Below, one piece after another: positions 17,435 through 42,203 of a DNA stretch of 64,000 bases. Positions within the stretch are counted from its first letter, which is position 1. The number at the start of each line of letters is the position of its first letter. The notes beneath the pieces are model-generated. The model did no database searches. It was given only the letters and a program-made list of their open reading frames with translations, and had not been told where the DNA came from. The stretch lies in assembly GCA_025558095.1 (NCBI GenBank), contig JAIVFI010000010.1, forward strand, positions 372,001 through 436,000, written 5' to 3'. Source of the DNA: Hyaloraphidium curvatum SAG 235-1 (taxonomy: Eukaryota; Fungi; Monoblepharomycota). The position numbers and the translations under genes were made by a program.

Positions 17435-17669
17435 CGCGCTTGAACATTCCCGGGCCGCAAGTCCCACGCGGCGACACTCGGAAGTCCGTGCTGGCTAGCC
17501 TTCAGCGCTTCCCTGTCGAGCTCAAACGAACCCAAACATCACAAATTGCGGAACGGGCTTCCGATCGGCCCAGGAGCTTGGGGGGACGTTGGGATAGCGG
17601 CGGTGCCTTGGCGGCCGCGCGGCGCTGCGGCCTGATCACGTCCTCCCCCGACGACACGAGAGGGATCGG

Positions 17670-19375
17670 ATGGACGTGAAGGTACGGCCATCCTTTCGCG
17701 ATTTTGGTTTGCGTACATGCTTATCGAACCTTGCGGCGCACAGGAGACGCGCGATGCGCGCTACGAGGAGAACGACGAGGGGGAGAGGAAGCTGAACCAA
17801 TACGTCCGTTCCTCGGCCCGGATTTCGAAGGACGGAGCCTCATACGCGGCCTTTCCCCCCTTTACCAGTTGCTTAAGGAAGTTCTTGGTCGGGGATCGTT
17901 CGGGATCGTGAGGTGGGCCTGCCTACGCATGACGCGACTTGGGACCGCTGACACCGCCGCAGCCTGGCAGAGGACGTCAACACCGGCCAGCAGTATGCGA
18001 TCAAGGAGTTCTCCAAGACGCGGCTCCGGAAGCGGGCCCAGTCGCAGATGACGTTTGGGTTCCGGGGCCGAGGCCGGGGTCGCGGGGGCCGGGCTGCGGC
18101 GCCTCCTCCCGTCGACCAGGACCCCTTTGAGCACATCAAGTCGGAGATCGCCGTGATGAAGAAGCTCAGTCATCCGAACATTGTGCGGCTGTTTGAAGTG
18201 CTCGACGCGCCGGAGCACGATTCCTTGTACATGGTGTTTGAGCTGTGCGGCGGCGCCGTCATGGACGTTGGGTTGGACACTGAAGGCGAGGGAGTGGGCG
18301 AGGCGAAGGCGCGGGAGATTTTGCGGGAGGCGGTTCTGGGGATCGAGTACCGTGAGCAGCGCCCTTCGCGCACCTGGCCCGGTGGCTCACATCCTGCCTT
18401 TCGACAGTTCACGAACACGACATTGCACATCGGGATATCAAGGTATACCGCCGCGCGTGCCGTTTGTGCTTGCAGTCGTTAACGGAATGCCGCTTCATCA
18501 ATCACAGCCCGATAATCTCCTCATGTCGCCGTCGGGCGCCATCAAGATCGTCGACTTTGGCGTTTCCGAAATGTTCAGCAAGGGAAACGACAAATCCAAG
18601 AAGTCGGCGGGGTCGCCTGCCTTCTTCTCGCCGGAGATGTGTACGGCGCAGCACGGAGAGCTGAGTATGAAAGCCTGCGACGTGTGGGCTCTCGGGGTAA
18701 TGTTTTGCGGGGCTTTTGGTCCTTCAAAGGCTGAGCTGCTATCTTGGCAGGTCACCCTCTTCTGCCTGGTGTTCGGGCACCTTCCTTTCCGGGGCTCCTC
18801 GATCCTTGAACTCTACGAAAACATTCGTAGCCAACCGTGGGGGGGAGCGAAGGCCTCTTACGATGTCTCTGCTTACTCGACTTGCTTAGCCTCGAAATCC
18901 CACCCGGAGCCTCCCCCGAGCTGAACGATCTGTTGGCAAAGATGCTGGACAAGGACCCTTCGCAACGCATAGACATCGTCGGCATAAAGGTCCGTACAGA
19001 TCACTACGCGGTTCACCCCACTGATCCAACCTTCTCGCACAGAACCACCCCTGGATGACCAACCGCGGCACCCTCCCCCGTCTCGCCGACACGACCGAGA
19101 ACGTCGAAAAGATCGGCAAGCCGGTCACAGAGGTAACGGAGGAGGAAATCAAGGCTGCCATCCGGCCGCTTCGCTTCTCGTCGGCCGTCACGGTCATCCG
19201 GGCGGCGGCACGGTGGCGCAAGCTCGGCTCCAGGGGCTCGTTCTCCAGCATCACGTCGTCGGGTTCCCCAGGGGCAGAAGCTGCGAGGAGTCCGGCATCG
19301 GAACCGGCCAAAAGCTTTGCGGACGTGCTGGAGGGGGTGACAAAGCTTTCGACGGGGGATCCCGACATTCCATAG
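17670..19375 (+). CDS. CaMKK-family Ser/Thr kinase (Ssp1/Sak1/CaMKK-like), many short exons
   Basis: ERKLNQY|LLKEVLGRGSFGIV, YAIKEFSK, EIAVMKKLSHPNIV, HRDIK|PDNLL, DFGVSEMF..SAGSPAFFSPE, DVWALGV and a basic CaM-binding-like tail FSSAVTVIRAAARWRKL. Confidence 0.88.
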
Positions 19376-22981: not shown

Positions 22982-25550
22982 ATGGAGGCCAACGCTGCTG
23001 CCGCCGCCGCCGCCGACGCCATGGCGTCGAACCACGCCGGCTACACGGTGCGCCGCCCGCCGCGCGCCCGCCGGCCCGCCTGACCCGCCGCAGGTCACCT
23101 GGGAGAACGTCAACTGCCGGATCAAGACGGGCAGCCTCTTCCGCGAGAAGAAGGTCGTGCACTCGCTCATCGACAACTCGGGCTTCGCGCGCCCCGGCGA
23201 GTCGCTCGCCATCATCGGCCCCTCGGGCGCCGGCAAGACCACGCTCGTCGGTGGGCATCCCGGTGCCATTTGCCCCGAGGGACGGCGGCTAACGGGATTC
23301 CAGACATCCTGTCGCAGCGCAAGTCGCTCGGCGAGGTCACCGGCGAGGTCCTCGTCAATGGCCAGAAGCCGGACATCTTCTTCAAGCGCCGGCTGGGCCA
23401 GATCACCACCATGATGGCGCACATCCCCACGATGACCGTCCGCGAGACGCTGATGTTCGCCGCCGAGTGCCGCATGCCCCGCCACGCGACCAAGGAGGAG
23501 CGCATCGCCCGCGTCGACGAGGTGATCGCCGGCCTCAAGCTCACCAACGCCCAGAACACCCCCGTCGGCGACGAGCTGATCCGCGGTGTCTCGTCGGGCG
23601 AGAAGAAGCGCACCGAGGTCGCCACCGAGATGATTGCCCGCCCGCGCATGCTCTTCCTCGACGAGCCCACCTCGTGAGTCGCCGAGCTTCTCCGCTGTTT
23701 GATCACTTTGCTGATCCACCGCCGCCCTTCACAGGGGTCTCGACGACTTTGGTGCGCGCTTCACCATGGAGCTCGTGCTCAAGTACGTCAAGTCGGAGAA
23801 CGTCTGCGTCGTCATCGTCATCCACCAGCCCTGCGAGGCCGTCTTCAAGCTCTTTGACAACACCATGATCATCTGCGAGGGCCGAGCCTGCTTCTTCGGC
23901 CCTGTCGCCGCCGCCGAGTCGTACTTCTCCACGATGGGCTACCCCACGCCCAAGCTGCAGAACCCCATCGAGCACTACCTCGACGTCTGCTCGGCCAACG
24001 CGACCGCCGCCGCCGACTACTACGACAAGTCGCCCCTCGCGACGGCCAACCTCGCCGAGATCGCCCGCCTCAAGGGGCAGACCTACGGCGCCGTGCGGTA
24101 CTCGGAGTACATCGTCGAGCGCCCGTGGTGGGACCAGATCCGCCTGGTCGGCTACCGCTGCCTCATGCGGTACTGGCGCAACCCGTCGACCTCGTGGGGC
24201 CGGCTCTTCATGTTCACGCTCCTCGGTCTCCTGTTCGGCATCCTCTTCCTGAATGTGAGTGGATTGGTTGCTGCTGCCGCCCCGGAGTCCGACTGATCAC
24301 TGGTTGCGCCATCAGCTCACCAACAACCTAGCGGGCATCCGTAACCGCCTCTCCATCAGCACCACCTACGCTTTCCTCGCCATCTACGTGGCCGTCGCCT
24401 CGGTGCCCCAGTTCCTCGAGGACCGCGAGCTGTACCTGCAGGAGCTCGACACCGCCTTCTACTCGACTCCGCCGTACTGGATCACCTACCTCCTCATCGA
24501 GGGCTGCATGTGCACCGTCATCACCACCATCCAGATGGTCATCATTTGGTTCATGGCCGGCTTCGACGCCCAGTACTTTGGCCCCGTCTACCCGATGATG
24601 TTCGTGCAGTTCTGGCTCGCCGTCGCCGTGTCGCAGGCCTGGTCGGCCTGGTGCAAGACCCTCGTGCAGGCCTACACCGCCCTCTGGGCCGCCGGCCTCA
24701 TCTTCTACGCCTTCTCGGGCACCCAGGCGCCGCTCGGCACCGTCACGCCCGCCCTGAGGTGGATGGCAGACATCAACTACTGGCGTTGGGCTCTGCAGTA
24801 CATCGTGCGTATTCCGGGGACCGGGCTTTGCACCCGGAGCGCACAGCTGACCCTCCCGCGTCTCCCAGATCTGGCAGGTGATGAAGGACTACATTATGGA
24901 GTGCCCGACCACCTCCTCCACTGCCTTTGCCGGCCCCACGGCCCGCGGCTTCGCCAACGCGATGAACGCGACCTTCGTCGCCGACCCCGGCAACGCCGTC
25001 AACGTCGCGCAGTTCTGGGCCGGCATGGAGCTCATCTTCTCGAACGCCGTCGCGGGCCAGTTCCCCGGCGCGACTCCCGTCACCCAGGCCGCCCTGGTCG
25101 GCAACAGCAACGCCGTGGCCTCGGCCATCGCCCCGATCGCCAACAACGCCTCGTTCGGCCCCACGCCCGACCGCTACATCCCGGCCCTGGGCCCGTACAC
25201 GCTGTACAACAACGCGTCCGTCACGGCCCGCGAGGTTGCGCAGAACTCGGCCGCCTTCCCGCCCGGGTACTTCTGCCCCGTCGGCCAGGGCCGCGACTTT
25301 GTGCGCAGGTACCGCGACCTGTCGCCCGAGAACCCCGCTACCAGTGAGTTTGGCCGCATTGCTGCGCATGCGCCGCATCTGAGGCCTCCCGCTCCGCAGC
25401 CAACATTGCCTACGCCGTCAACGTCTGCCTGTTCGTCTTCTTCGCGACGATGGTGCGTTGGCTGCTTCCCATTTGCCTTTCGCGTCGTCTCACTCTTTCC
25501 TTCAGACGTTGTTCGGCCTGATGTTCTCGCGCAACTACCGCAAGAGGTAA
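22982..25550 (+). CDS. ABCG-family half transporter B (NBD-TMD), spliced
   Basis: Walker A GPSGAGKTT, TVRETLMFAAECRMP, signature GVSSGEKKR, Walker B LFLDEPTS, VIHQP, YWRNP and a TMD; ends FGLMFSRNYRKR* at 25550. Confidence 0.93.
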
Positions 25551-25889
25551 AACAGTGCCAATACTTGTATACACGGGATTTGGAATGTGGATGTGATTGG
25601 CAGTCAGTGCCCTTCCGGAGGCATCAGGCATCACTACACTTCGTTGGCCTCTTTCCCTTTCGCCTCACGGCGGACAGTCCAGACTATTCCCCGGTTTGGG
25701 TGTGTCATCATTCGGACAGATCCAGGCGTCACTTCTGCAGGGCATCGTATTCCGTCGCAGCATCTCCACCCAGGTACATCCAGAGCCCAAAACATCAGAA
25801 CCGAAAGAAGGAAACATCAACCGTGAGACTCCGTTGCTCATCAACCGTGCGCAGCTTCACAATCGGGCTCGGGGCTTTCCGTGCAGCCC

Positions 25890-28800
25890 TCAGCCTCTTC
25901 GCGGCACAACCTTGCTCAAGGAGTCCGCTCCCGGGCGCGGAAGAGGGGTCGGGGTGGTGGGATGGGGTCGTCGGGGAGGCGGAACCGGCGGTTTTGAGGC
26001 GGTTTTGCGCGCGGGAGCCGGCAAGACCGAAGGAGTTGGCCGCGTCTGCTTGCTGCTTGCATCGCTCTTGGACGCCGTGCCGTTCCCGATCCTGTTGCGC
26101 CACGCAGGCAACACCAGGTTGCGGTACGGGTCCGCGCCGGCCGTCGCTGTGCACGCACGCAAAACGCATCAGTTCGGCACCGAGCTTTCGTGCGAATCAA
26201 CACACCGATCGTCGGCGCCCCACTGCTCGGCTCGCCAGCATCACCGTCCCGCTGGTCCGGCCGCTCGTCTGGAGGCTCGTCGTATGCCGGGTAGAAGATA
26301 AAGAAGCCCTCCCTGACCAAACGAGGCGACTTGTCCGACGCCCCGTCCGGCTCCCCGTCCGGCTCCTCGTCCGGCTCCTCGTCCGGCTCCCCGTCCGGCT
26401 CCCCGTCCGGCTCCCCGTCCGGCTCCCCGTCCAGCTCCATCGGAGGCACTGCTTTTCTCTTGTCCGCACGACGCGCAAGTGTGAAATCCGGAGAGCGCCG
26501 AGACGACAGGACCGTGTCCAAAGTGTGCGCGATGTCCGGCGCTACTTCGGGATTGATCAGTGCGATCGCACGCAGGACGAGCACAAAACGCAACCTACGC
26601 CTGAAGGGAAGAGAGGAAGCCTGCACCTTCCGCACTTCGGCAGCCCGCCCCCGATCGCGTTCCTTAAAAGACCAGGGAAGGATGTGCGCAGATCAGACCC
26701 CAGTCGAGGGACTCGCGCGCTCCCCCCACCCTGAGCGCTTTCTGCTGCCTCTCCTCGGCAAAGATCACCTCGCCCGGCCCATCAACCCGCGTCATCATCT
26801 CGATACGGAACTGCAGGGAGAGGCGTGAGATCGGAGCACCGCAGGCAACACGATCGCACGCACGTGGGGGTCGTCGTCCTGGATCCCGAGCGGATTGCAA
26901 AGGGCCTTGACGGTGCGCTGACGGACGATCAGCATTCGAAAACAACGTGAGGCCAATAGCCTGGTAGTACCTGGCTCGACTGTCCGAGATCCGTTTCGGT
27001 CTCCAGCCAGCCCCTCCGGCGCTTGGCGATCTTCCGTTTGCGCGGCCCGTGCAGCAGCGTGGCGTCGTCCTGGAGCGAGTCCCGCTTCCGCTTGGCGCTT
27101 GAAGGCCGGTGCGGACCCGGCAGCCGCACGACAGTGTCGGGCTCGACGCGTTGGTTCTTCGGCTTGGTGAAGGGCATCTCCGCGGGATCCACCAGCTCGG
27201 AACTGATATCCGAGTTCCGATCCCCCGATCCCCGATCGCTCTGATCCTGCTCCGGCCCGCGAGGGCTCTCGTCGAAGGACCAGTTGTCCGACAGGTCGCC
27301 GCCGCCGTCCGGGTTCCTGCCGTCCGAAAGAGCGTCGATCAACTCCAGCTCGACAGGCTCGCGCCGGAACTGCGAGCCGATCTCGCCGCGGTCCAATTCC
27401 TGCTCGGCCTGCGAGAAGATCTCGTCGCGGTTCGACTTCAGCGCCGAGTCCTCTTCCTCTGAGTCCCGGGACCCCTTGCCGCTGCCGGACTCGTCTCTAT
27501 CCCTGCCCGAGTCATCGTCGTCCGAGCGCGGATCCTCGTCGTCGTTCTGGGGGAAGAAATCGTCGCCCTCGTCGTCCTCCGAAGGCCAATCTTCGTTGTC
27601 CGGCTTCGAATCGCCGGCGCCGGAACCCGAATCGCCGCCGTCCGGCTCCTCGTCGTCGTCGACCCGGTCCGGCTCGTCGGGCTCCTCGTCGTCCCGGTCC
27701 AGGTCCTCCTCCTCGTTCCGGTCCGGCTCGTCGTCGTCCGGGTCCGGCTCGTCGTCGTCCGGGTCCCTGGGCTGCGAGGGTCCCGATCTCTCCGAGTTCG
27801 AATCCTCCAGATCCTCGAGCTCGACCTCGGGCATGTCCTCCTCCTCCTCGAGCTCCTTGGCCTGCTCGAGGCCCTTGACCGGCACGTCGTCGAACTTTCC
27901 GTCGTGGGCCATCTGGAACGTGACGGCCGGCGGCGCCTTGCGGGGCTTGAGCTCCTCGTCGACGTGCGTGTAGTCGAACGGCGTCAAATCCAGGTCCCTG
28001 TATTCGGGAATGGTGCCGACGGCGTTCGGCGGGGGGCTGGTGATGACGCTGAGCTTGACCCTCGCGGCACTGCGACGCGGCGGGAAGGAGTAGCTGAAGC
28101 CGACCTTGGCCCTGCCGCCGGCCTTCTCGCTCATGTACTCGGCGATGGCATTAGCTTGCACCGCGGGGTACTGTCTGAGGCCCCGATCGGGCAGAAAGGG
28201 TCTCGGAACACGCTTGAAGTGTTTGGGCAGCCGGTCCAGGACCATCCGCTGCGACATGGTGGCATGGCCGACAGCAGCAGTCCGAGACCAGTCGAAAGCG
28301 TCACGGCACTCCTCGGAAGCAATCTGCTCGCCGGCAATGACCTTCAGCAAGATGGCCATTCCGGTCATGGTCGCCGCGGCCTTGATCAGCGGGCCCAAGA
28401 ACTCGTTCTGGAAACGGTAGGTCTCCTCCATTCTGAAGAGCCACAAGAGCTCCACCGCCTCCGGGCCATAGAGCCCGCGCATGGCGGTCTCGGCATCCTT
28501 GTACGAAGCCAGCTCGGCCACCGACACCATGCACGAGATCAGGCACGATTGGGTCTTCGTCAGGCGGCGATTGAGCTGCTGCAGCATCTCTGGTCCGGCG
28601 CGCCCGAGCGGCGACCGCGAGTCCTCCGCGACAAAGAACGCCGCCGGCTCACTGAGCTCCAGGAAAAACCGGTCGAAGACGTCCTTGGCCTCTCCCCGCT
28701 CGCCAGCCGAATGCGCGGGAAGCTCGAGCGCCAGGATCTCGAGCCCGGGCACGATCCGATCGACGAGCGCGGCGAACGCGTACATGATCTCGTTCTGCAT

Positions 28801-31530
28801 CTGGAGCGCCGGGAAAAAGGTGTCCTCGACGACCGCGCTCCGCGAGTTCCTTCCGCCGGAGAGGCGGGGGACGACCACGAGCTTCTTTATGCCTCGAAGC
28901 AGGATGGGCAGGATCACCTGGAGCGGGAGACAACGGGTCAGCGAGTTTCAGCGAGGAGGTGCGCCGGCAAAGGGCCAGCTCACCGTCTGGGCAAAGAGAA
29001 GCGGCAGCCACTCCGTTCCCTCGCGAAGCTCATTCAGGAAATGCGTCTTTGCCGCCGTGATGCGCAGCCGGGAGGTACGCTCCTTGTTGAGGTTTTCGCC
29101 CCAGCGCATGTCGTTCAAAACGCTGCCGATGGACTGAACCCTGAACTGCTCGATGTCGGCAGGGTGCAGCGTGTTGCCTCGCCAACCGAAGATCCGCCAC
29201 CCGAGGTCCGTGGCCAGCTTGAGGATCGACAGGAAGACCTCCCCAAGCCGGGTTAGGCGGAACGGCGTGGAGATTATCAGGACCTTCAGCCCGTTCCGGA
29301 TAGCCTCCATGTCCAGCGGCGCGCTGCCCCTTTTCTGCACCAGCAAGTCGTTCGGGATGTCGAGGTTCAGCACCCTGATCAGGGCATCTCGTTGCGTGGC
29401 ACCCGGCTCCGAGGCGCCCGAACCACATTCGCCGAGGAAGAGGAAGAGCCTGAGCTTGCTGAGGTCGAACAGCCGCTCGACGTGGGCGCAGTTGTTGTAC
29501 AGCTGGTAAACAATCAGGCGCAATGCGTCCGCCCCCATCTGCGACGCCCTGCCGAAGTCGACCATCACCGCCGGCGCCAGACGATCGAGCGGCCCCGGCC
29601 ACGCCGGCTTCGGCATCGGGCCCCGGGCCTTGCGCTTCACCGGAGTGGCGAACTCGCCGGGGTTGATCGCGAAATCGGGCGCCTCGTCGAGGCGCTGCTC
29701 CGCCGCCGCCGCCGCCGCCGCCGCCGCGGCCTCGTCGACGGCCTCTTCCCCCGCCTCCTCGGCCGAGTCCAGGAAGCGCCGCAAGTGCTCCGGACCGCAG
29801 CATTCGGGAGTCAGGCGCTCGTCCGGGGGTCCGCGCCTGCAACGCCAGCGGGTCAGTTGGCTCGCGAGGGCTCGATCAGCGCACCCACTCGATCATTTTC
29901 ATGCAATACTGGCACGCGATCAGGCCGGACATGTAGCCGAGCACGTACTCGTCCGTCTGGGAGACCGTGAGGTAGTAGTAGAGGTCGGACGACGGCCCCC
30001 TCTGGCGGAGGAAGTCCTCGCGGACCTCGCTGGCCGCGGATGCATCGTCAGCCCGCGATTGCCGCCGGACGCTCGCGCACCCACCGCTCGAAAACCGGGA
30101 CGAACCAGATGTAGTCGGAAGGTTGGACGAGGTTGGGGTTGCAAGGCAGGTCCTTGCAGTACTGCGCGCAGCCGTTCCTCCCGTTGACGATGTACCAGAC
30201 CATGTAGCCACACCCCTCGGGGCAGACGCGCGGCTCCTGGCCGTACTTCTTGCAGAGCGCGAGGTAGTGCGGTGCGCAGCACCCGCTGACGCGTGCAGGT
30301 TCCATCAGCTGCGCCCGGCGAACCGCGATCGTGTGCACCCACTGCTGCCCTTTCGAGAGCGGCTCGCCGCAGATGCACTTGCCCGAGCGGATCGCCAGGC
30401 GCACTTTGTCCTCGGGCGACTCGCCGAACGGCGTCGTCGAGTTTTTGGGCCGCTCGCCGATCGGGAGCTGGAAGTCGGAAGAAGGCGGGACCCAGTCCGC
30501 GTAGGCCCAGGCCGGAATGTTCTTGGATCGCTTTTCGGCGCAGCGCCCGGTCTTGGCGTAGGTGCCGCACGCGTAAACGTACTTCCGCAGCATCATCTGT
30601 CGGCATCCGCCCCTGCACACGGGCACGGACTTCCCGCTCTGCTTCAGCTTCTGCAGGCAGCCGTGGCCGCAGGCGGTGCGCCTCCTGGTTGCGCAATCCG
30701 TCAGGGCGCTCGGCGCGGGAGCGCGAAAGCAAAGCCACTCACGCCGCCATCGGATTGCCGCAAACCTCGCAGGTGTCCGTCTTCTTCTCTTTTGCGGCAC
30801 CTCCGGTCTGCTGCTTCTTCTGCACGCCGCCGGGAGGGTTCCGCCGGGGCCCGGGCCTTTTCTTGAGCGAGTAAGCGCACGCGAGTCCGCGCTTCGCGCA
30901 CTGGTTGCAGGTCGGCTTGGCCGAGTTGCATTTCCGCCGCACTTGGCCGCATGCGTCGCAAACGCGCCTGAGCTGCGCGGGCGCGCCGCCGTGTTGGGCG
31001 GGCCTCGTGCCGCCGATCTGCTCGACCGCCTCGTCGTCCGCGGTCCGCTGGTCGGGGGTGGGCGACGCCCCCGGTCCGCGGCGAGCGCGCTTGCGAGGCT
31101 TCTCGTCTCCGTCCTCGTCGGGCTCGGCCCCCGTGCCGGGCTCGCTCTTCTCGTCGTCCGTCCCGCTCTCGTCGTCCGTCTCGCTCTCGTCGTCGTCGGC
31201 CTCCCCGTCCTCGGCGTACTCGCTGTCCGAGGCGTGCTTGCCGAAGAAGCTCGGGAACATCGACTCGGCCGAGGCTGACTCAGCCGCGGGCCCCAGGACG
31301 TCCGACATCGCCTCGTCGTCCGGTCCGCTTGCTTCCGAGACGTCCGTCGGCCACAGGTCGGAGTGGACGCTCAGCTCGGAGGACACGTCGGAGCCGGCGT
31401 CGGGCGCCGCGCTCCCGCCGCCCGCGCCCCCGCCGCCCGCGCCCCCGCCGCCCGCGCCCCCGGCGCCCGCGCCCGCGCCGGCGCCGGCGCGCCTATTCCC
31501 GGTCTTCTTGCCGAGGCTGGGCCGCGCCAT
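25890..31530 (-). CDS. Large multi-exon orphan protein: Zn2Cys6 cluster, several Cys/His zinc modules, two tandem serine-recombinase-like domains and an acidic tail; 3' exons tentative
   Basis: The ORFs join in frame across GT-AG introns at 30685-30742, 30030-30084, 29837-29888 and 28918-28983 (checked codon by codon). Zn2Cys6 is CDACGQVRRKCNSAKPTCNQCAKRGLAC. Resolvase-like motifs are DFGRAS..YQL..ECGSG..QRDAL..VLIISTPFRLTR and VVPRLS..LQMQ..AHSA..FFVAEDSRSPLGR. Confidence 0.7.
26340..26432. repeat. 12-bp tandem repeat (ccccgtccggct variants, ~7.5 copies) encoding DGEP/DEEP on the minus strand
   Basis: Directly visible repeat; the ORF track reads DGEPDGEPDGEPDGEPDEEPDEEPDGEPDG. Confidence 0.9.
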
Positions 31531-31664
31531 CGTCCGATCGGGAGCGAAAGTTGGTCGAGTCGATCGATGGCGTGTCAGCAATCAACCACACAAACCGCCT
31601 CCCGCCCCCCGGGGAAACCAAAACCATTCTTTTTCAAAAATCACGGGCCCCTACAATTCTCGGC

Positions 31665-31736
31665 CGCAATGCCACTTCAAAGCTTCGCCTGGCTCTTGGT
31701 CGCAATGCTCCTTCAAAGCTTCGCCTGGCTCTTGGC
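31665..31736. repeat. 36-bp tandem duplication spanning the malate synthase stop codon
   Basis: cgcaatgccacttcaaagcttcgcctggctcttggt (31665-31700) versus cgcaatgctccttcaaagcttcgcctggctcttggc (31701-31736). Confidence 0.93.
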
Positions 31737-33928
31737 CGTGACGATGGACGGGTACAGCAGCGTGGTCAGGAAGTCGGACTGCAGGCGGGGTCAGCTGAAT
31801 GGCCGACCCGATCACAAAGAAACGACTCACGTATGCCGGGGTGGCAATGGTGCTGAAGAGCGCCTCCTTGGCGGCCAAGAACTTGGACGTTTTGAAAGCC
31901 ACCTCCCCTACAGACTTCTTGAGCTTGTCCGTCTCCTCGTCCAGCAGCTGCTTGAGCCAGTCGGCCGTGACGGTCTTGCCCTCGGCCGTCTTGACCTTTG
32001 CACGAGTGACGCTCTTTGTCAGCTTCCGCAGTAGCCGCCGCACCGACTCCACTCACATTGTTCTTCTGCCACTGCCAGAGCTGCGAGCGCGAGATCTCGG
32101 CGGTCGCGGCGTCCTCCATGAGGTTGTGGATGGGCACGCAGCCGTTGCCGCGCAGCCAGGCCTCCATGTACTGAAGGGCGACGTTGATGTTGCCCCGGAT
32201 GCCGTTCTCCGTCACGGCGCCCTTGGTGTCGCGCGTGTTGAGCAGGTCGGCGGCAACGACCTTGACCTCCTCGCGGCGCACAAACAGCTGGTTGGGGCCG
32301 GGCATGTACTGGTTGAAGATTTCCATGGCGATCTTGACCAGGTCGGGGTGGGCAACCTGGGAGCGTTCCGGAGCCTTCCGTGAGCGACAGCGAGGCCGGA
32401 GATGGTCGGCAAACCCACCCAGGTGCCGTCGTGGCCGGCCTTCACTTCTCTCAGTTTGTCGGTACGAACCTAAATCGGAGGAATGGAGGAGCCAGCAATG
32501 CCGCCATACAATCGAAAACGCACCTTGTTCATCGCAGCCTCGTTGGCGGCGGCGTTGTCCTTGATGGGGATCTGCGCGGCCATACCGCCCATGGCGTGCA
32601 CGCCGCGGCGGTGGCACGTCTTGATGAGCAGGCGCACGTACGCATCCATGAAGGGCGTGGTCATGGTGACGTCGGCGCGGTCGGGAAGCGTGAAGGCGGG
32701 GTTGTTTCGGAATTTCTTGATCACGCTGAAGATGTAGTCCCAACGACCGCAGTTCAGGCCCGCCGAGTGGTCGCGGAGCTCGTAGATGATCTCGTCCATC
32801 TCGAAGGCGGCCGGGATGGTCTCGATCAGGACGGTGGCGCGGATGGTTCCCCGCGGCACGCCGAGCATGTCCTGGGCCATGTTGAAGATGTCGTTCCAGA
32901 GCCTGTACCGTCTGCGGTGAGCCAAGGATCATGGTCAACTGCCGCCAGATCGCCCACCTGGCCTCGAGGTGCGACTCCATCTTGGGCAGGTAGAAGTACG
33001 GGCCGGCGCCGATCTTGACGGTCTGCCTGGCGTTGTGGAAGAAGTAGAAGCCAAAGTCGAAGATGGAGCCGGAGCAGGGCTCGTTGTCCACGACGAAGTG
33101 GGCCTCCTCGAGGTGCCATCCACGGGGGCTGAGACGGACATGAGCGCCGCTCGGTCCGAAGCCACAGACTACCCACCGAACCATCAGCGTCGCAAGCTTG
33201 CCGTCCTTCCTCAGGTAGTAGCTCTTGCCGTTGGGGCCGGGGTTCTGGAACGAGATGGTGCGCTCGTTGGCGTCGCGCAGGTTGACCTGGCCATCAATGT
33301 TGTTCGACCACGTGGGGGCGTTCGAGTCTAACACAAGGACCATCAGAAGACGCAACAAACGCTTCGAGGGAACCGACCTTCGAAGTCGGCCATGAACACC
33401 GACGCGCCCGCGTTGAGGGCGTTGATGATCATCTTGCGGTCCACGGGGCCGGTGATCTCCACGCGGCGGTCCACGAGGCCCGGAGCAGGGGCGGGTCCCT
33501 TCCACGCATCGTTCTCGCGGATGTGGCGGGTCTCGGGCAGGAAGTCGAGGAGGGCCTGCGCGCCGGAGTCAGTTCTGCCTCCCTCCCCGAAAGCCCGCCC
33601 CACGCACCCCAGCATCGAGAGCCTTCTGCCTCTCCACGCGCCTCGCAAGCAGCTCCTTCCGACGTCCGTTGAACACGCGCTGCGAGCGGCCGGCTCAGCG
33701 AACCGGCGATGGGCGGCGAGGCGGACCCCGCACCTGGAGCGTGGCCACGAAGGTCTGGGCCTCCAGCGAGAGAATGTCGGCCTGAGCGCCCGACACGGCG
33801 CCGAGAATGGAAACACCGGGGATGGTGGCGACCACTGGAGAGGCGGGGCGCGATGCAAGGCGGGGGCAAGGCGTCGGCAGCGCCATGTCAGGCACCGTCG
33901 CTCCCGCGCGGCTCCGCAGCCACCCACT
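31713..33928 (-). CDS. MLS1: Malate synthase A (glyoxysomal, C-terminal PTS1 AKL), many introns; start ambiguous
   Basis: [106 protein letters not shown]; last exon [21 protein letters not shown]. Confidence 0.96.
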
Positions 33929-34336
33929 TGCTGCGCGGCTAAATGAGCTTCGCTGGATGCGTTCCGGACTCTGGGCGGGCGAGCGCTGGTCGGGGTGTGG
34001 CCGGCCAACGGACTTTTGTCGGTTCGTCTTCCGCACCAGAGTGAGCCCTGCCCTCGAGCTCCAGCAAGCACGTGCCTGCAGAACGCTGGGGTCAACCTGA
34101 GAAATCGGCCGTTACAGCTTTGCCGAAAGGTCAATACGGACTAAAATCATCTCCTAGAGCTAACCTGCGGGAGTTCTGGCTCGATGATGACGTGTACCGA
34201 TCGCGGCATCTGCGGAATGTCACGCCCCTTCCAACTCCAGAGCTGTCGCTAGATCGGGCTCGAATGCGCGATCGACGCGAACGTTTGCACCCATGTCTCT
34301 AATTTGACGGCAGCCCTACACTCCTGACGATGAGAA

Positions 34337-36307
34337 CTACTTCGAAACCTGGGAGAAGGTGGCCTTGATGAAGTCGGTGGTGAGGGACTTCGGACGCTCG
34401 ATCCTGGCGCGCGGGGCGTGAGGCCGTGCAACGGTACGGAGCAACAACAGACGTACGGGAGGCCGTAGATGCGGGCCCAGATGAGGCCGTTGAGGACGCC
34501 GAGGGCGCGGGAGACGCCGAACAAGACAGTGTAGTAGTCCTGCTCGACAAAGTTGTAGTGCTGGGGAGAGCGGACGTGAGCTGCGCGAAACGGCCGGCCC
34601 TGGCGCCAGAGCGAGCCCACCTGGAGGAGGACACCCGAGTGGGCGTCGACGTTGGGCCACGGGTTCTTGGTCTTGCCCTGCTCGGTCAGGACGCCGGGCA
34701 CGATGTTGTAGAGCTGGCTGACGAGCTTGAACATGGGGTCCGTGGGCAGGTGCTTGAGCGCAAACTCGCGCTGGCACGTGTAGCGGGGGTCCGTCTTGCG
34801 GAGCACGGCGTGGCCGTAGCCCGGCACGACCTGGCCCGACTTGAGGAGCTTCCAGAGGTAGTTCTTGATGTCCTCGTCCGAGGGGTTGGTGCCGACCTCG
34901 TCCCTCATCTTGAGGATGAACCTGAGCACCTCCTGGTTGGCGAGGCCGTGGAGCGGGCCGGCCAGGCCGTTCATGGAGGCCGCGAAGGAAAGGTAGGGGT
35001 CCGAGAGCGCAGAGCCGACGAGGTGGCACGTGTGCGCCGACACGTTGCCGCCCTCGTGGTCGGTGTGGATGGTCATGTACAAACGCATGAGCTCGATGAA
35101 CTTGGGGTCGTTGTACCCGAGCAGCTTGGCGAAGTTGGCCGACCAGTCCAGGTTGGGGTCGATCTCGCCGAGCTTGCCGTCCTTGTACACGTTGCGGTAG
35201 ATGCGGGCCGCGACCAGGGGCAGCTTGGCGATGAGGTCCATCGAGTCCTCGTACACGTACTCCCAGTACTGGGACTTGCCGACGCCCGAGGCGTAGGCCT
35301 TGGCGAAGCTGCTCTCGTGCTGGAGCGCGGTGACGGCGAGCGACAGCTGGCTCATGGGGTGCAGGGTGTTGGGGCAGCGGTCCAGGATGTCCTCCACGTA
35401 GGAGGGAATGGCCGAGCGCGCGGCCCACTCGGCCGACAGGCCCTTGACCTCCTCCTTGGTCGGGACCTCGCCGGTAACCAGCAGCCAGAAGAGGCCCTCG
35501 GGGAGGGGCTCCTCGCCACCCTCGGCAGCGGGCAGGAGCTTCTGGCACTCGGGGATGCTGAGGCCGCGGAAGCGGATGCCCTGGGCATGGACTTGTCAGT
35601 GATCCTCGGGGCAGGCAGCCCGAATCAACCCCACCTCCTCCGCATCCAGCAAAGAGCCCTCCCAGATCATGCCCTTGATCCCGCGCATACCGCCGTAGGC
35701 CTATACCGCCCCGCGTGTACGCCAGTCAGCGCAAAAGGCAAGGAAGGTGGATGTGATCGCCGTACCATGTCAACGGTCACGTTGCCCAGGGACTTGGAGC
35801 CGTACTTCGTGCGCACATCCTTGACCTCGGCAACCTTGTCCGGGATGATTTCCTTGAGCCGCTCCTTGAGGCTCTGTGTGGCGCGGTTCCGAGCGGACGG
35901 TCGGAGCCGGGCCTGTCAGCTCGACTTCTGGGACCGGGCAGGCGCGCCGCGACTGGCCGAACGCCGCATCGTGGTAGCAGGCACACGAACCTTGGCCTTG
36001 GCGGTGGCGTAGCACCTGGTGGCCGCCCTGAACGACGCGGCGCCAGCGAGCTTGCTGGACGCGGGGCGCAGGCCCTGAGGAATCCAACCCGATGCGGTCC
36101 AAACAGGGGGAGCCATCGACCGTCCAGGTGTCCCGGGCCGACAATTCGCCCAAAGCAGGGGCATCCGACGCGATGCGAGCGCGGGAACGGTTAGATGGGT
36201 CCCGGTCCCTGCGCCACGCGGCCACGGCGGGCTTCCGGCCCTCCGCGACGCGCGCGGCTCTCCCGGCAAACACGCACGGCGACGAGCATCGTCTGGGAGC
36301 TCAGCAT
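34337..36307 (-). CDS. CIT1: Citrate synthase (mitochondrial type), spliced
   Basis: Arg/Ser/Ala-rich presequence, [78 protein letters not shown] and IERPKS. Confidence 0.97.
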
Positions 36308-36557
36308 GGCGGCGGGTGCGGGGCGTGGCTGGCCGTGACGGTGTGCGGGTCGGGCCGGGAAGCGGAGCCGCGCCGGATCAAAACACGGCAATCCCTACGC
36401 GAGTCTTGCAGCGTCGGCGGTTGCGGACGCGTCCGATGGGCAGCCGGCTGCCGGGAGACCGCGGTTCATGTAGGGCGCTGGCGGCCCGGAGGGGCGGCGC
36501 TGCGGGAACGCGTTGAGGGTCGAACCACGAAACTCCGGCGTGCCCCCGACGCATCCG

Positions 36558-39500
36558 ATGGCCGGGACGCGGCCGGGAGGCAATGCCGCGGAGGGCCTCT
36601 TTTCCTTTGCTCGGCTGGACGAGTCGGAGCCCGCGCCGTCGCCCGCCTCGGAGGCACGGACGGCGTCCCCCGGGGCCGGCATATTCTCGCGCTGGCTCTC
36701 GCGTGTCACTCCGTATGGATCGAAAGCGGCCGGGCAGCAGTCGGACGGAGCTTCGGGGAGCTCGGCGACAAGTGCGCCAAACGCCCGCCGGTTTTCCTCG
36801 ACGCCGGCCCGGTCGTCCCCCCTGGCCGCCGCGCAGTCCTCCGACCGAGCGAACTCCACCGAGACGCGGTCTACAGGCTCTGAGGCACGCTCCACGGGAT
36901 CCGAAAGCGGCAGCACTTTCTCGGGATCCAGCACGCAGACGGCAATGCCCGAGGCACGAGAGACCGTGTCGGCTATTGGCTTCAACAGACCGAGGCATGA
37001 CTCCGAAGCCGCCTCGACGACCTCATTCGGAGGGTCCAGCCCGCAGAGCAGCATCCTATCGCCCTCGGTGCACCGGGCTGGATCGGGTCGCGTTGTGTTT
37101 GGACGCCAGGGACCGGGCTCCTCGCCCCAGCGGGTGTCGACCTCCAGGGCCGACAGCGCGAGCGACTTGCTGTCGCGGAGGTACTGGATGAGCGACGAGT
37201 CGGCCAAGGAGTGCTACGACTGCAAACAGTCATTCACTGCCTTCAATCGACGCCATCACTGCAGGATATGTGGGCTCATTTTTTGCAGCAAGTGCTCGTC
37301 CAATTTCGTGCCGGGACAGCCGTTCGGGTCGGAGCGTGATGTGCGGGCGTGCAACTATTGCGCGAACCGCCTTTCCATGCCCACGGATTCCCCCATTGCT
37401 ACGCCCCGCCCTCTGAGCACGACGGAGTCGCTTCTCTTCGCGCCGCACATGCTGGAAGCTGCCGTCAACGCCATTGCGGGGATTCCGTTTCGACAGGGCA
37501 GCCGCGTCAGCGGAGATCTTGCCACCACGCCGACGGAAGCGTCCCCTGTCGCAGCCGGCATGGGTCGCCTCTTCGGCGTGCGATCGTCGCCGTCCATCAA
37601 CGAGCCGGTTCCGTCGGGGTCGGCCGAACCGGGTCTCCGCAGCAGCCAGCCCGAAACCGCTTCGATCAACCCCCCGGACGGCCCCGATCTCGCCGTTCCC
37701 AGCTCGCCCGATCGCCATTCTTCGCCGGCGCTCGTGGTGCCTTCCTCCTCGTTCGACGTCTCCGACAGCGACGCCGACGACGAGTGGAACTACGGGCTGG
37801 ATCCCGTCGGACGCGCCCCATCCAAGCGCAGCCTCCGTTCCGAGGGCGGCGCGAGCCCGCCGCCGGGGCTCGACGGCGTGAGGGCGCAGTTCATGCGGCA
37901 GCGCAGCCGCAGGACGGTGTCGGGGAAGGCAAGGGTTGCGGTCGGGAAGGACGTGTGGGAGGCGAGGAACAGGAGCGCATCTCCGGGGTCCAGGAGAACG
38001 GCGGTACCGAGGACATTCCACGAGCTGGACGTCGCAGGGACCTCGGGAGCACATTTGGTGGGTTCGCTGTCGGTAATTGCTGGCAGGTACCCTTTGGGCT
38101 CACACCACACGCACAGCGCAAGATGATCCGGCAGATTCTGTCCGAATCGCAGATCGTTGAGTCGGAGGGCTGGGACGACATCATCTTCCGGTTCTCGACC
38201 GAGGTGGCCCGCCGTGTCAACTTGGACGTCTCCGCCGGCGACGACCCCGACATCCGGCAGTACGTCAAGGTGAAGCGGATACCCGGCGGCTCGCCCTCTG
38301 GATGCGAGTACGTGAGTGGCATCGTCATCTCCAAGGCCGTCGCGCACAAGTCCATGGTCAAGCGGATCCGGAACCCCCGGATCCTCCTACTCAGCTTCCC
38401 GCTCGAGTACGAGCGGGTTGAGAACCAGTTCGTTAGCCTGGAGAGGGTGCTTGCCCAGGAGCGCGAGCACCTCGGCAACCTGGTTGCGCGGATCCGGGCG
38501 ACGGAGCCCGACGTGCTGCTGGTCAGCCGCTCCGTATCGCGCCTCGCGTCCGATTTCCTTCGGGAGGCGGGCATCGCAGTCGCTTCGAACGTAAGGCTGG
38601 AAGTGCTCGAGGCCATCGCAAGGGCGACGCAGGCGGACGTGGTTCGTTCGATCGACCGGCTGGCGTTCAATCCCCAACTGGGCACCTGCAGCGCCTTCGA
38701 AGCGCGCTACTATGCCATGCCCGACGGCAAGAGGAAGGGGTACCTGTGGTTCGAGGGATGCCCGCCCCACTTGGGTTGCACGATCGTTTTGCGCGGCGGC
38801 GATTTGGACAAGCTGACGAGGATAAAGCAGGCGGTCACGCTGATGTGCCTGGTTGTGCACAGCCTGAGGCTGGAGATGTCGCTTGTCAACGATCAGTACG
38901 CGATGATGGTTCCGGCTACCGGCGCCGACGATGCGACTGCGGCCGCGGATTCGGACGACAAAGCGGACCTTGCGAGTCTCGCAATGGAGCAAGCGGATGC
39001 GGCCGAGAATTCCAGCGTTCACGTCGGTACCGTCGACGGGTCTCGGGCGAAACTTGCGTCGAACCTCGGCGGTTCCCACGCTGCAGGGCCACCTTCCCTG
39101 CGCACGTTGGCTCTCGCTGTTGAAGATGCAGCGGCAATCCGCCGTTACTTTGCCTACTCCGGAGTCATAATCTCGGGCTCGCCTAATGTGAGGTTCCCAC
39201 CCCCGTATCCCCTCCGCCGGCGACTTTGGGAGTGCCTGGGTCATTTGGCGATATCGCGCGATACGGAGCTCTCCGAGTCTCTTGTCGCCCGCGTGCTGCG
39301 TTTGGACCATTTCGAGGTCATCGCTCCCGCCGACACTGAACAGCTGAGCCCTTTTGCACACCAGAACCTGGCCATCCTTGCCTACCTCATCTGCCCCGGG
39401 AACCCGGTGCCGTGTCAAGCGCCCGAGATCGTGAGCGTGGACTACTACGGCGCCACGGACCTCACCATCGGCCAGTTGGTGCAGGGCATGTGCGCACAGG

Positions 39501-42203
39501 CTGCGATCCGATGTGCCACGAAAGGTTGCGACAAGCCTTACCTTGCGCACTCGCGCGCCTTCGTTCACGGTCGCGGCCAAGTTGGCATGCAGGTCGAAAA
39601 GAGGCCTTGCCCGATCCGGGGGCTGGAGAACAGCATGCTCATGTGGAGTCAGTGCCGCATCTGCAACAAGTCTACGCCGTGCATAGCCATGGGCGAGGAC
39701 ACGTGGAAATTTTCGACGGGGAAGTACTTGGAGCTTACATTCTACTCCGCGGGGCTGCACTGCCGCGCGGACCTGTGCCCGCACGACGTGCAGAGGGATC
39801 ACGCGCGCTTCGTCGCCTACCGAAACCTTGCCGTGCGCTTCGAGTACGCGCCCATATTGACTTTCGAGCTCGCCACGCCGCCGTTGCGTGTGCAGTTTGA
39901 CGACGACGTCAAGATGCGGCTGAAGTCCCAGGACATGTCTTCGCTCAAGCAGACGATCGTCCGCTTCCACGACGCCATGCTCGACAGACTGAAGTCCGTC
40001 GCGGTGGGCGACACCACCGTGGCTCCCGCCAAGCTGCAGGCTTGCAGGGACGACCTGGCCGAGCTCCAACGCAAGGTCGTGGTGGAGAAGAACCAACTCC
40101 TGGACTTGCTGCAGAGCACCTTTTCCGCGTCGAGCCCCAGCGACACCTTGGCCATCAATGCGGTGCAGCGCTCCTTCGTTGCCCGATTCAAGGAGTGGGA
40201 TGCCGAGTTTCAGAACTTCGGCAAAACGTATCTCCAGCCGGAAGCAAAGGATCTGCGCCGCATGACGCTCCGCAGGGTGTTTGGGGACGATCGTGACACG
40301 ACCCCGCCGACGACGCCGTCCACCATCCCTGAGGCTTTGAGCTCTTCAGCCGGGGATGATCCTTCCCGCGGTATGCCCGGTGTGGGAGAATCCCCCAAGA
40401 TGGTACACCGTCAGTCCACGGATTGGCAGGGGTCCCGGAATGAGAGGGCTGTCGACCTCGACCTGGGCTCCCCGGTTCTCGGACTTTCATACGCGGCAGA
40501 TCCCGATGTTGACGAGGCGTCAGACTCGGAGACTCAGGACAGGGGCTACGATCTTGACGGCGTGACACTTCCCCGTCCGCCAGTGCGAGCCAATTCTCTC
40601 GAAGAGTACGGAGATTCAGCTCTGCTGGCCCCAGAGACAAAGGATACATCACCGGCAACGTCAGTTTCTCCATGGTCCGCGTACGACATCGCGCGCACCA
40701 CGGACGAAGATGGGGCTCCCGGCGTCAATGAGCTGAGCGGTGTCGTTACCGGCGACAGTCAGGATGCTACAGCAAATGCCTCGCAAGAGAAAGCGAGCCT
40801 TTTCCAGACTGTGGCTGCGCTTTGGACAGGTGCCACCGCGACTTGGCAGCCTTTGGTCAACCCCTTGTGAGTAGGCCAGCCTTGTCCGTGCTTGCCCCAA
40901 CGACCGATCCCCTCCAGTCCTCCCACAGAGCACGTTCTGCCGGATTCCTTAGTCGTAATCCGCGAAGACGAGCCGTCCTCGCTGATCGCCTACTCTCTGA
41001 GGTACGGCATCGTTCGCATCCCTGGACTTGTTTTGACTTGAGAAGCACGAGGGAGTACAAGATGCGACTCGACCTTCTCAAGGAGGCGGGTTCGGCTCAG
41101 AACATGGCGTCGGGGAAGGAGGGGCAACCGATGAAGCCCGTAGGCCCCAAAGCCTCTGTCCCGGACTCGCCGAAGGACGTTGGTGTGGCTCTTGAGGACA
41201 TGCTGCTCAAAGCCGCAGGCCACAACATGCGGATCGAAACGTCGGACGGCGCAACAGCCATGATGTGCAAGATCTTCTACGCCGAGCAGTTTGACGCTCT
41301 CCGTGAAGCGTGCGGTGTGGATCCAGCTGCGTACGTGTCGAGCTTGGCTCGTTGTCTGAAGTGGGAATCGGCTGGCGGCAAAAGCGGGTCGACATTCATG
41401 AAGACTCGAGGTGGGCCTGTCGACGCAGGTCATGCATGGCAGTCACTTACTATCCGCTTTCTTCAGACGAGCGCTTCATCATGAAGGAGCTGCCCAAGCC
41501 CGAAATGGAGGCGTTCCTCCAGCTCGCCCCGCAGTACTTCCGCTACGTCTCCCAGTCTCTTTTCCATTCTCTTCCGTCTGCGATCGCCAAAATCTTCGGG
41601 CTCTACCGTGTAAAGTTCAAGAATCCGGCGGGCAAGATTGTGAAGCTCGACGTCGCCGTCATGGAGAACCTCTGGTTCGGCCGGAAGGTCACCCGCGTGT
41701 TCGATCTGAAGGGTTCGCTGCGGAACCGCATGGTCGCAAGCACGGGCAAGGAGAACGAGGTCCTTTTGGATGAGAATCTCATCGAAAGTGGGTGTGAGGC
41801 CGGTTCGGCGGCGTTGACGCCACTAAAGTCCGCCGCAGTGATGTACAAGGAGCCTTTCTTCCTCCACCCCACGGACAAGTCGCTATTGCGAGCCTCGTTG
41901 CAGAATGATACCCTCTTCTTCACGAAGTGCAACATCATGGACTACTCCCTACTCGTTGGGGTCGATCACGCTTCGTCCCAGCTTGTCGTCGGCGTGGTAG
42001 ACTACATCCGGACCTTCACCTGGGACAAGAAGCTTGAAAGCTGGGTCAAGGAAACCGGAATTCTCGGGGGCGGGCGCGACCCGACCATCGTGGGACCCCG
42101 CCTTTACCGCAGCAGGTTCCGTGAGGCCATGGAGAAGTACTTTCTCGGCGTGCCCGACAAGTGGACCCCAGTGCCGGCAGGGACGCGGAACCTGCTGTCG
42201 TAG
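36558..42203 (+). CDS. FAB1: 1-phosphatidylinositol-3-phosphate 5-kinase Fab1/PIKfyve, spliced
   Basis: FYVE domain YWMSDESAKECYDC..RRHHCRICG, CCT-like YVKVKRIPGG, Cys-rich CHK region, and PIPK motifs GGKSGS, FDLKGSLRNR, MDYSLLVG and DYIRTFTWDKKLESWVK. Confidence 0.96.

Follow-up and report, generated by a model that had tools for sequence, protein, structure and literature searches.

Whether a fungal gene that joins a DNA-binding domain to stretches resembling a site-specific recombinase is part of a mobile element, a domesticated enzyme, or an ordinary host gene is the question raised by a locus in Hyaloraphidium curvatum SAG 235-1. The locus was examined within a 64,000-nucleotide stretch of contig JAIVFI010000010.1 (assembly GCA_025558095.1, positions 372,001 to 436,000; G000:C10:372001-436000), referred to here as the window. 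The assembly comprises 31.9 Mb in 55 contigs, and this monoblepharid chytrid has a G+C content of ~65%. The gene in question, hereafter the target, occupies the minus strand, with an ABCG transporter gene pair on one side and the malate synthase gene on the other, and begins with an ATG at 31530-31528. A preliminary description, made by reading the sequence without database searches, considered it either a new kind of serine-recombinase transposon or a domesticated rearrangement enzyme. The analysis presented here points, with moderate confidence, to a lineage-specific host gene that would encode a nuclear, sequence-specific DNA-binding regulator of ~1,540-1,720 residues. On this reading the target is not a mobile element.

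The DNA-binding part of this proposal is a Gal4-type binuclear zinc cluster (Zn2Cys6; CDACGQVRRKCNSAKPTCNQCAKRGLAC) encoded at 30873-30960 on the minus strand, as are all features of the gene given below. Searches and fold predictions were made exon by exon, with each exon treated separately. The cluster matches Zn_clus (Pfam PF00172) with 29.2 bits against a gathering cut-off of 21 (E 1e-6), and its cysteines are spaced canonically as C-x2-C-x6-C-x6-C-x2-C-x6-C (CDAC-x6-C-x6-CNQC-x6-C), the family spacing being C-x2-C-x6-C-x5-12-C-x2-C-x6-8-C. Zn_clus is the sole recognised family when each exon is compared with Pfam, NCBIfam and PHROGs. The domain had been placed at these same positions by eye, and the view of the product as a chimera of several modules, a fungal Zn2Cys6 domain among them, is supported.

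The zinc cluster is followed by 20 further cysteines in ~250 residues, beginning with a CEVC motif where exon 1 ends and reaching into the first part of exon 5. Three look-alike modules can be discerned among them, namely CEVC-x10-CGHGC, CIC-x11-CCAPH and CQYC-x15-CCGPEH, and all the Cys/His modules listed earlier were found in the sequence. In a partial paralogue elsewhere in the genome (described below), the last of the three reads CCGPEC, with the histidine replaced by cysteine. Exchanges between His and Cys are frequent at zinc ligand positions. Since such a swap is expected of a zinc ligand, it supports zinc binding by these modules, and the modules probably bind zinc.

The remaining composition of the protein also agrees with what had been read from the letters: an N-terminus rich in Gly (more precisely Gly/Ala) and acidic residues, basic runs resembling nuclear localization signals (KRARR, KRKR, RKRK and KRRR), and a long D/E tail. 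The acidic tail (27418-27867) holds 72 D/E in 150 residues, and a basic cluster of the form KRKR...RKRK..KRRR follows at 27010-27093. The mode of action proposed for such a regulator is as follows. The basic runs would direct nuclear import, and the Gal4-type cluster, a domain clearly present in the sequence, would bind DNA. The ~20 further cysteines and several histidines of the CxxC...CCxP(E)H modules would hold zinc and make extra contacts with DNA or protein, two orphan globular domains might serve in assembly or regulation, and the long acidic stretches could act as an activation or interaction region.

The structure of the gene was established with contigs assembled from one public sequencing run, which is taken to be RNA because its contigs skip introns. 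These contigs show zero sequence differences from the window and contain the joints of eight GT..AG introns, of which four had been proposed from the sequence (30742-30685, 30084-30030, 29888-29837 and 28983-28918) and four are added here. The four proposed introns share a 5′ end of GTGAGT or GTGGGT, a CTGAC branch site and a 3′ CAG. Tracked exon by exon, the reading frame stays open across nine exons to a stop at 25916-25918, for a total of 1,717 codons. Arithmetic on the size of the RNA contig carries the RNA support to ~26461, so that the protein has at least ~1,536 residues; the earlier estimate of at least ~1,440 residues, longer if exons down to ~25890 were included, is thus extended, with three 3′ introns keeping the frame open to 25916-25918. 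The last ~90 residues of the frame look non-coding, and the 3′ end with its stop is provisional. The correction of the gene model by RNA evidence is in itself a result of the work.

Exon 1 (30743-31530) encodes the Gly/Ala-rich and acidic stretches, followed by the basic run KPRKRARR, the zinc cluster and the first CxxC (CEVC); its start is kept in the partial paralogue (MALPGLGKK...). Intron 1 (30685-30742; 58 nt, GTGAGT..CTGAC..CAG) is represented by an RNA joint at 30683/30742 (cut +1). It is followed by exon 2 (30343-30684), with the motifs CGHGC, CRGGC, C..C and CIC and eight cysteines in 113 residues, and by intron 2 (30286-30342; 57 nt, joint 30285/30343), which is in frame and had been missed. 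The motifs CCAPH and CPEGC and further cysteines, eight in 66 residues, occupy exon 3 (30085-30285), which is separated by intron 3 (30030-30084; 55 nt, joint 30029/30085) from exon 4 (29889-30029). The latter ends in CQYC, the first half of the third CxxC...CCxPxH module, and shares 62% protein identity with the partial paralogue. Beyond intron 4 (29837-29888; 52 nt, joint 29835/29888, cut +1), the 284 full codons of exon 5 (28984-29836) complete that module with CCGPEH and continue through an Ala run into an orphan domain.

The second half of the gene begins beyond intron 5 (28918-28983; 66 nt, joint 28913/28980, cut +4). Exon 6 (26971-28917) is the largest, with 649 codons that hold a lineage-specific domain, the D/E tail and the C-terminal basic runs, and it lies within one RNA contig. 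Intron 6 (26918-26970; 53 nt, joint 26917/26971) is spliced out, which removes an apparent stop at 26929-26931. Exon 7 (26864-26917) has only 18 codons and is joined across intron 7 (26811-26863; 53 nt, joint 26810/26864) to the 27 codons of exon 8 (26730-26810). Intron 8 (26663-26729; 67 nt, joint 26661/26729, cut +1) precedes exon 9 (25916-26662), which contains a (GEPD)n repeat and an open frame of 248 codons.

What, then, are the two orphan domains? They correspond to a recombinase-like pair in the preliminary description (28560-29570, which covers the body of exon 5 and the first part of exon 6), and searches of family, PDB and large sequence databases give no support to this label. The second of the pair, encoded by exon 6 residues 92-288 (28054-28644), is homologous to an open frame at G000:C27:451832-452404, with 26% identity over 200 residues and a pairwise E of 2e-9, and through that frame it is also linked to an open frame at C4:527535-527894. 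The surroundings of the former (C27:451200-453630) comprise a protein-kinase open frame and then, on the same strand, a 407-codon frame in which a domain of the exon 6 type is accompanied by an acidic tail and a stretch dense in Cys and His; the two frames may represent one kinase fusion gene of the exon 6 domain family. Pfam gave no match in exon 6 to PF07508 Recombinase or to the PF13408 zinc ribbon, both of large serine recombinases. In hhalign comparisons with a resolvase profile, the exon 6 N-terminus reached P 0.27 by itself and, when combined with its paralogue, P 0.04 over 11-17 columns, and a word-index search with exon 6 residues 1-335 returned nothing in a length window of 364-1158 residues. 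Judged from these comparisons, the exon 6 domain is part of a small host family of modular proteins and is not a recombinase domain. Because the domain recurs at two other loci, its modularity is of a host type and supports the reading of the target as a host gene.

Exon 5 has no such relatives. It has zero matches in Pfam, PF00239 Resolvase included, with hmmscan at E up to 10; together with the exon 6 N-terminus it has zero matches among PDB sequences at the same limit. No resolvase match to the domain was obtained by tblastn from 72,556 plasmids, and a full HMMER search of 1.84 billion representative proteins yielded no homologue. The sole match listed for exon 5, a bacterial repeat protein with a ~76-residue repeat containing ECGxGYxEPGAT, was rejected as spurious, its score being summed over 11 repeats. 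Within the genome itself, a six-frame scan with PF00239 found nine other places and not the target locus, a scan of the contigs with an alignment of eukaryotic recombinases found nothing, and a profile comparison of exon 5 with the genome's own serine recombinases gave a probability of 0.14%. AlphaFold2, run without homologues, provided no usable fold for exon 5 (284 residues) or the C-terminal 167 residues, with predicted local distance difference test scores (pLDDT) of 38 and 35, respectively. An AlphaFold input alignment that combined exon 5 with resolvases was rejected as circular. The characterization of the gene as an orphan therefore holds for exon 5 in the databases searched, but not for the exon 6 domain with its two distant paralogues, nor for the 5′ part with its partial paralogue in the same genome.

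There is, nonetheless, a weak resolvase-like signal on one 45-residue stretch of exon 5; the exon 6 domain shows none, and the recombinase-like pair is not confirmed. For hhalign, a resolvase profile was built from 27 bacterial resolvase domains of five genomes and three plasmids, and it recovered two H. curvatum recombinase families, used as positive controls, at probabilities of 99.2% and 97.8%. Against this profile exon 5 scored a probability of 3-6% (P 0.006). The match is limited to residues 176-220 (29176-29310; MEAIRNGLKVLIISTPFRLTRLGEVFLSILKLATDLGWRIFGWRG), where "LKVLIISTPFRLTRLGEVFLSILKLATDLGWRIF" aligns with the beta3-DRLxR-alphaD-beta4 region of resolvases (stretch "LIISTPFRLTR..."). 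None of 120 shuffled versions of exon 5 reached the score; exon 5 ranked second among 122 long open frames of the window, an unrelated frame scoring higher. With filters off, hmmsearch with a hidden Markov model (HMM) of 29 resolvase sequences gave exon 5 4.4 bits (3.4 bits for the stretch), or p 0.002 for one sequence, and p for the 45-residue resemblance as a whole ranges over ~0.002-0.015. In a language-model look-up, the 30 best neighbours of exon 5 were all PF00239 clusters, with a score of 0.90; they share 145 of 256 features with it, a value that by calibration fits a chance match or a distant relative.

The placement of the catalytic residues is not convincing. The equivalent of DRLxR in exon 5 is F-R-L-T-R, in which both arginines are kept and the aspartate is replaced by phenylalanine. 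Two placements compete for the catalytic serine. The motif FGRAS keeps an Arg and a Ser and lies ~95 residues before RLxR, as opposed to 58-75 in real enzymes. Extension of the hhalign alignment instead sets F, G and C of FLGECGS at the Y, R and S positions of Y-x-R-x-S, with zero confidence. By eye, further motif-like stretches (GECGSGAS...QRDAL and KERT) occur in the right order. As the Ser/Arg catalytic motif is not convincingly kept, strand-exchange activity is not expected. A serine-recombinase catalytic domain may be the ancestor of the exon 5 domain, which in that case would be extremely diverged. That the stretch is a true remnant of the resolvase fold seems doubtful, and a catalytically active domain would be considerably less probable still.

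The possibility of mobility was addressed through copy number, boundaries and synteny, all of which the preliminary description had named as informative. Protein and DNA searches of the whole 31.9-Mb genome found one full copy of the target. The sole further match is the partial paralogue mentioned above (G000:C36:~384550-385740), which is situated downstream of a PDK/BCKDK-like kinase gene, has 77-79% DNA identity and shares no boundaries with the target. It is internally deleted: its N-terminal ~96 residues are fused directly to the end of exon 3, followed by exon 4 and the first part of exon 5, with neither the Zn2Cys6 cluster nor the resolvase-like part. Terminal inverted repeats had not been seen by eye, and the computed search agrees, the best flanking inverted pair being 21 nt at 76% identity, which is chance level.

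A synteny comparison was afforded by a contig of 17.9 kb from a related organism (Logan SRR23967301, G+C 57%), which keeps the order PIP5K-FYVE-citrate synthase-malate synthase and then continues straight into a CaMKK-like kinase gene that corresponds to window 17600-18437. In H. curvatum this kinase gene is inverted and lies ~13.5 kb from malate synthase, with the ABCG pair and the target between them (window 17600-18437 and 31800-42200 were compared with the contig). The order of genes is broken next to malate synthase; the contig ends 1.2 kb past malate synthase, too early for an empty site to be visible, and displays a rearrangement rather than a clean empty site. No homologue of the target was found on this contig or on a second related malate-synthase contig, which is not syntenic. 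From the gene order, the target and the ABCG pair are placed at the breakpoint of a local inversion or rearrangement.

Genuine serine-recombinase elements are present elsewhere in the genome and allow a direct comparison. One family, designated B, comprises at least four copies of an ~8.2-8.4 kb element that are 97-99.96% identical and have sharp common ends (G000:C4:366968-375135, with other copies on C34, C46 and C9; a ~278-nt indel occurs in one of the copies). Its coding content includes a serine recombinase whose gene has introns (PF00239, 50 bits; one frame is 99% identical to the NCBI entry "Resolvase [Hyaloraphidium curvatum]") as well as large open frames without a Pfam match, and its sequence has the look of an active fungal transposon that carries a serine recombinase. 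A second family, A, is represented by serine recombinases at C9:338229-339697, C22:421710-422132 and C2:639991-640415, with copies 87-96% identical over ~1-3.4 kb and the C9 pair arranged head to head in inverted orientation. No similarity to the genome's serine-recombinase elements was found by tblastn with all target exons.

How these observations bear on the competing explanations may now be considered. That the target is an autonomous or recently immobilised serine-recombinase transposon, with Zn2Cys6 choosing the target site, is extremely improbable. The resolvase-like stretch and the break in synteny beside malate synthase relative to one related contig are all that speak for it. The locus is single copy, with a partial paralogue that shares no ends, has no terminal repeats above chance and at least eight spliceosomal introns, is expressed, and is unrelated to the real multi-copy elements of the genome; moreover, the break in synteny takes in the ABCG pair and an inverted kinase gene, as fits an ordinary rearrangement. 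Domestication, the other branch of the original proposal, would make exon 5 a highly diverged resolvase-fold domain captured from the genome's transposons and fused behind a Zn2Cys6 targeting domain, where it could serve as a module for forming dimers or tetramers or, less likely, as a site-directed rearrangement enzyme. It is an unlikely explanation, although it has a weak lead in the unanimity of the language-model neighbours, in the convergence of hhalign and hmmsearch on a single beta3-(D)RLxR-alphaD-beta4 stretch that retains the two arginines, in the failure of shuffled sequences to reach the score, and in the further motifs in their right order; the active-looking elements of the same genome are a possible source. 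Set against this are the standard tests of membership, in which no HMM, PDB or database match appears at the usual thresholds, the low hhalign probability and the unrelated frame that outscored exon 5, and the still lower value against the genome's own recombinases. The loss of the Asp, the two rival serines, a level of shared features that fits a chance match or a distant relative, and the lack of a predicted fold also count against it.

A further alternative, quite improbable in our estimation, is that the locus comprises two transcription units, a weakly expressed Zn2Cys6/Cys-rich gene made up of exons 1-4 with the first part of exon 5, and a stronger downstream gene from ~29560. RNA contigs cover 31417-31133 and 30885-30743, and exon 5 at 29836-29744 and 29562-28984; none bridges 29563-29706 or 30886-31132. 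Contig depth is 273 over 29562 to ~26461, versus 40 over 30885-29707, and the high-depth contig starts at 29562, one base past an in-frame ATG at 29565-29563. On the other hand, exon 5 reads from 29836 to 28984 as a single open frame, in which the upstream part meets no stop codon, and the gap at 29563-29706 adjoins a masked GCG repeat, where assemblers break. Holes in contigs of this kind prove nothing. Because the exon 5 frame is unbroken and the 5′ part lacks a stop, we infer a single mRNA with all parts of the gene.

Similar comparisons apply to the host regulator favoured here. As in fungal Zn2Cys6 factors, there is a canonical six-Cys cluster with a basic linker after it, along with acidic regions, runs resembling nuclear localization signals, and a single-copy, intron-bearing host gene. 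Unlike those factors, the target has neither the middle-homology region (fungal_trans; no Pfam match to PF04082 or PF11951 in any exon at E up to 1-10) nor the coiled coil typical of them, which was not found in the Pfam scan. These two absences weigh against the regulator, as do the unbridged gaps and unequal depth of the RNA contigs and the agreement of the weak resolvase-like signals of exon 5 with one another. The target also differs from these factors by its three CxxC...CCxP(E)H modules, two orphan domains and very large size, and it comes from a chytrid (Monoblepharidomycetes), not from Dikarya as do the factors compared. As it stands, the finding is of a Zn2Cys6 protein of unusual size from a fungus of an early-diverging lineage, with modules that have no relatives in public databases.

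Known recombinase systems offer a second frame of reference. IS607 TnpA is a serine recombinase with an N-terminal DNA-binding domain that is also found in some eukaryotic and viral elements (PMC3627910). The target resembles PF00239 serine recombinases and IS607 TnpA in the 45-residue beta3-DRLxR-alphaD-beta4 likeness with both arginines and in the N-terminal position of its DNA-binding domain, but it fails the family HMM, has Phe for Asp and an ambiguous placement of Ser, and is single copy; no TnpB/Fanzor partner was seen at the locus. The family B transposon shares its genome with the target and could have been the source of a captured recombinase domain, yet its 50-bit PF00239 match, multiple copies and sharp ends have no counterpart in the target, and the two show no similarity. 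Crypton-derived host genes are domesticated recombinase or transposase genes with clear homology to the transposon enzyme (PMC3212892). They parallel a domesticated target in that a mobile-element enzyme domain was combined with other domains and retained as a single-copy gene of the host; homology that is clear there is unproven here, and the enzyme of the target would belong to the serine rather than the tyrosine class.

We know of no eukaryotic host gene derived from a serine recombinase, and found none described. Were exon 5 a genuine, extremely diverged serine-recombinase domain, captured from the chytrid's own transposons and fused behind the zinc cluster, a proposition that is tentative and that we tend to doubt, a domesticated serine recombinase would have been found in a eukaryotic host gene for the first time. 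With the zinc cluster selecting the sites, the protein might then still bring about synapsis or rearrangement of DNA, and a recombinase targeted in this way would amount to a naturally occurring programmable site-specific recombinase.

Two short repeats were observed at the edges of the target. One, located where the 3′ ends of the target and the ABCG gene face each other, is a sequence of ~85 nt (25619-25707; …CACTACACTTCGTTGGCCTCTTT…GGTCTGGGTCTGTCAC) that recurs with ~90% identity at at least five other places (C15, C16 twice, C3 and C1), with a right end that is sharp and common to the copies. Nothing was returned by Rfam and tRNA scans of 25300-32000 and 25300-26000, and the sequence could represent a small RNA gene or one end of an unclassified repeat. 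Just upstream of the 5′ end of the target, at the 3′ end of the malate synthase gene, there is a 36-bp tandem duplication (31658-31729) with 89% identity, at which a joint in an RNA contig goes back by the same 36 positions.

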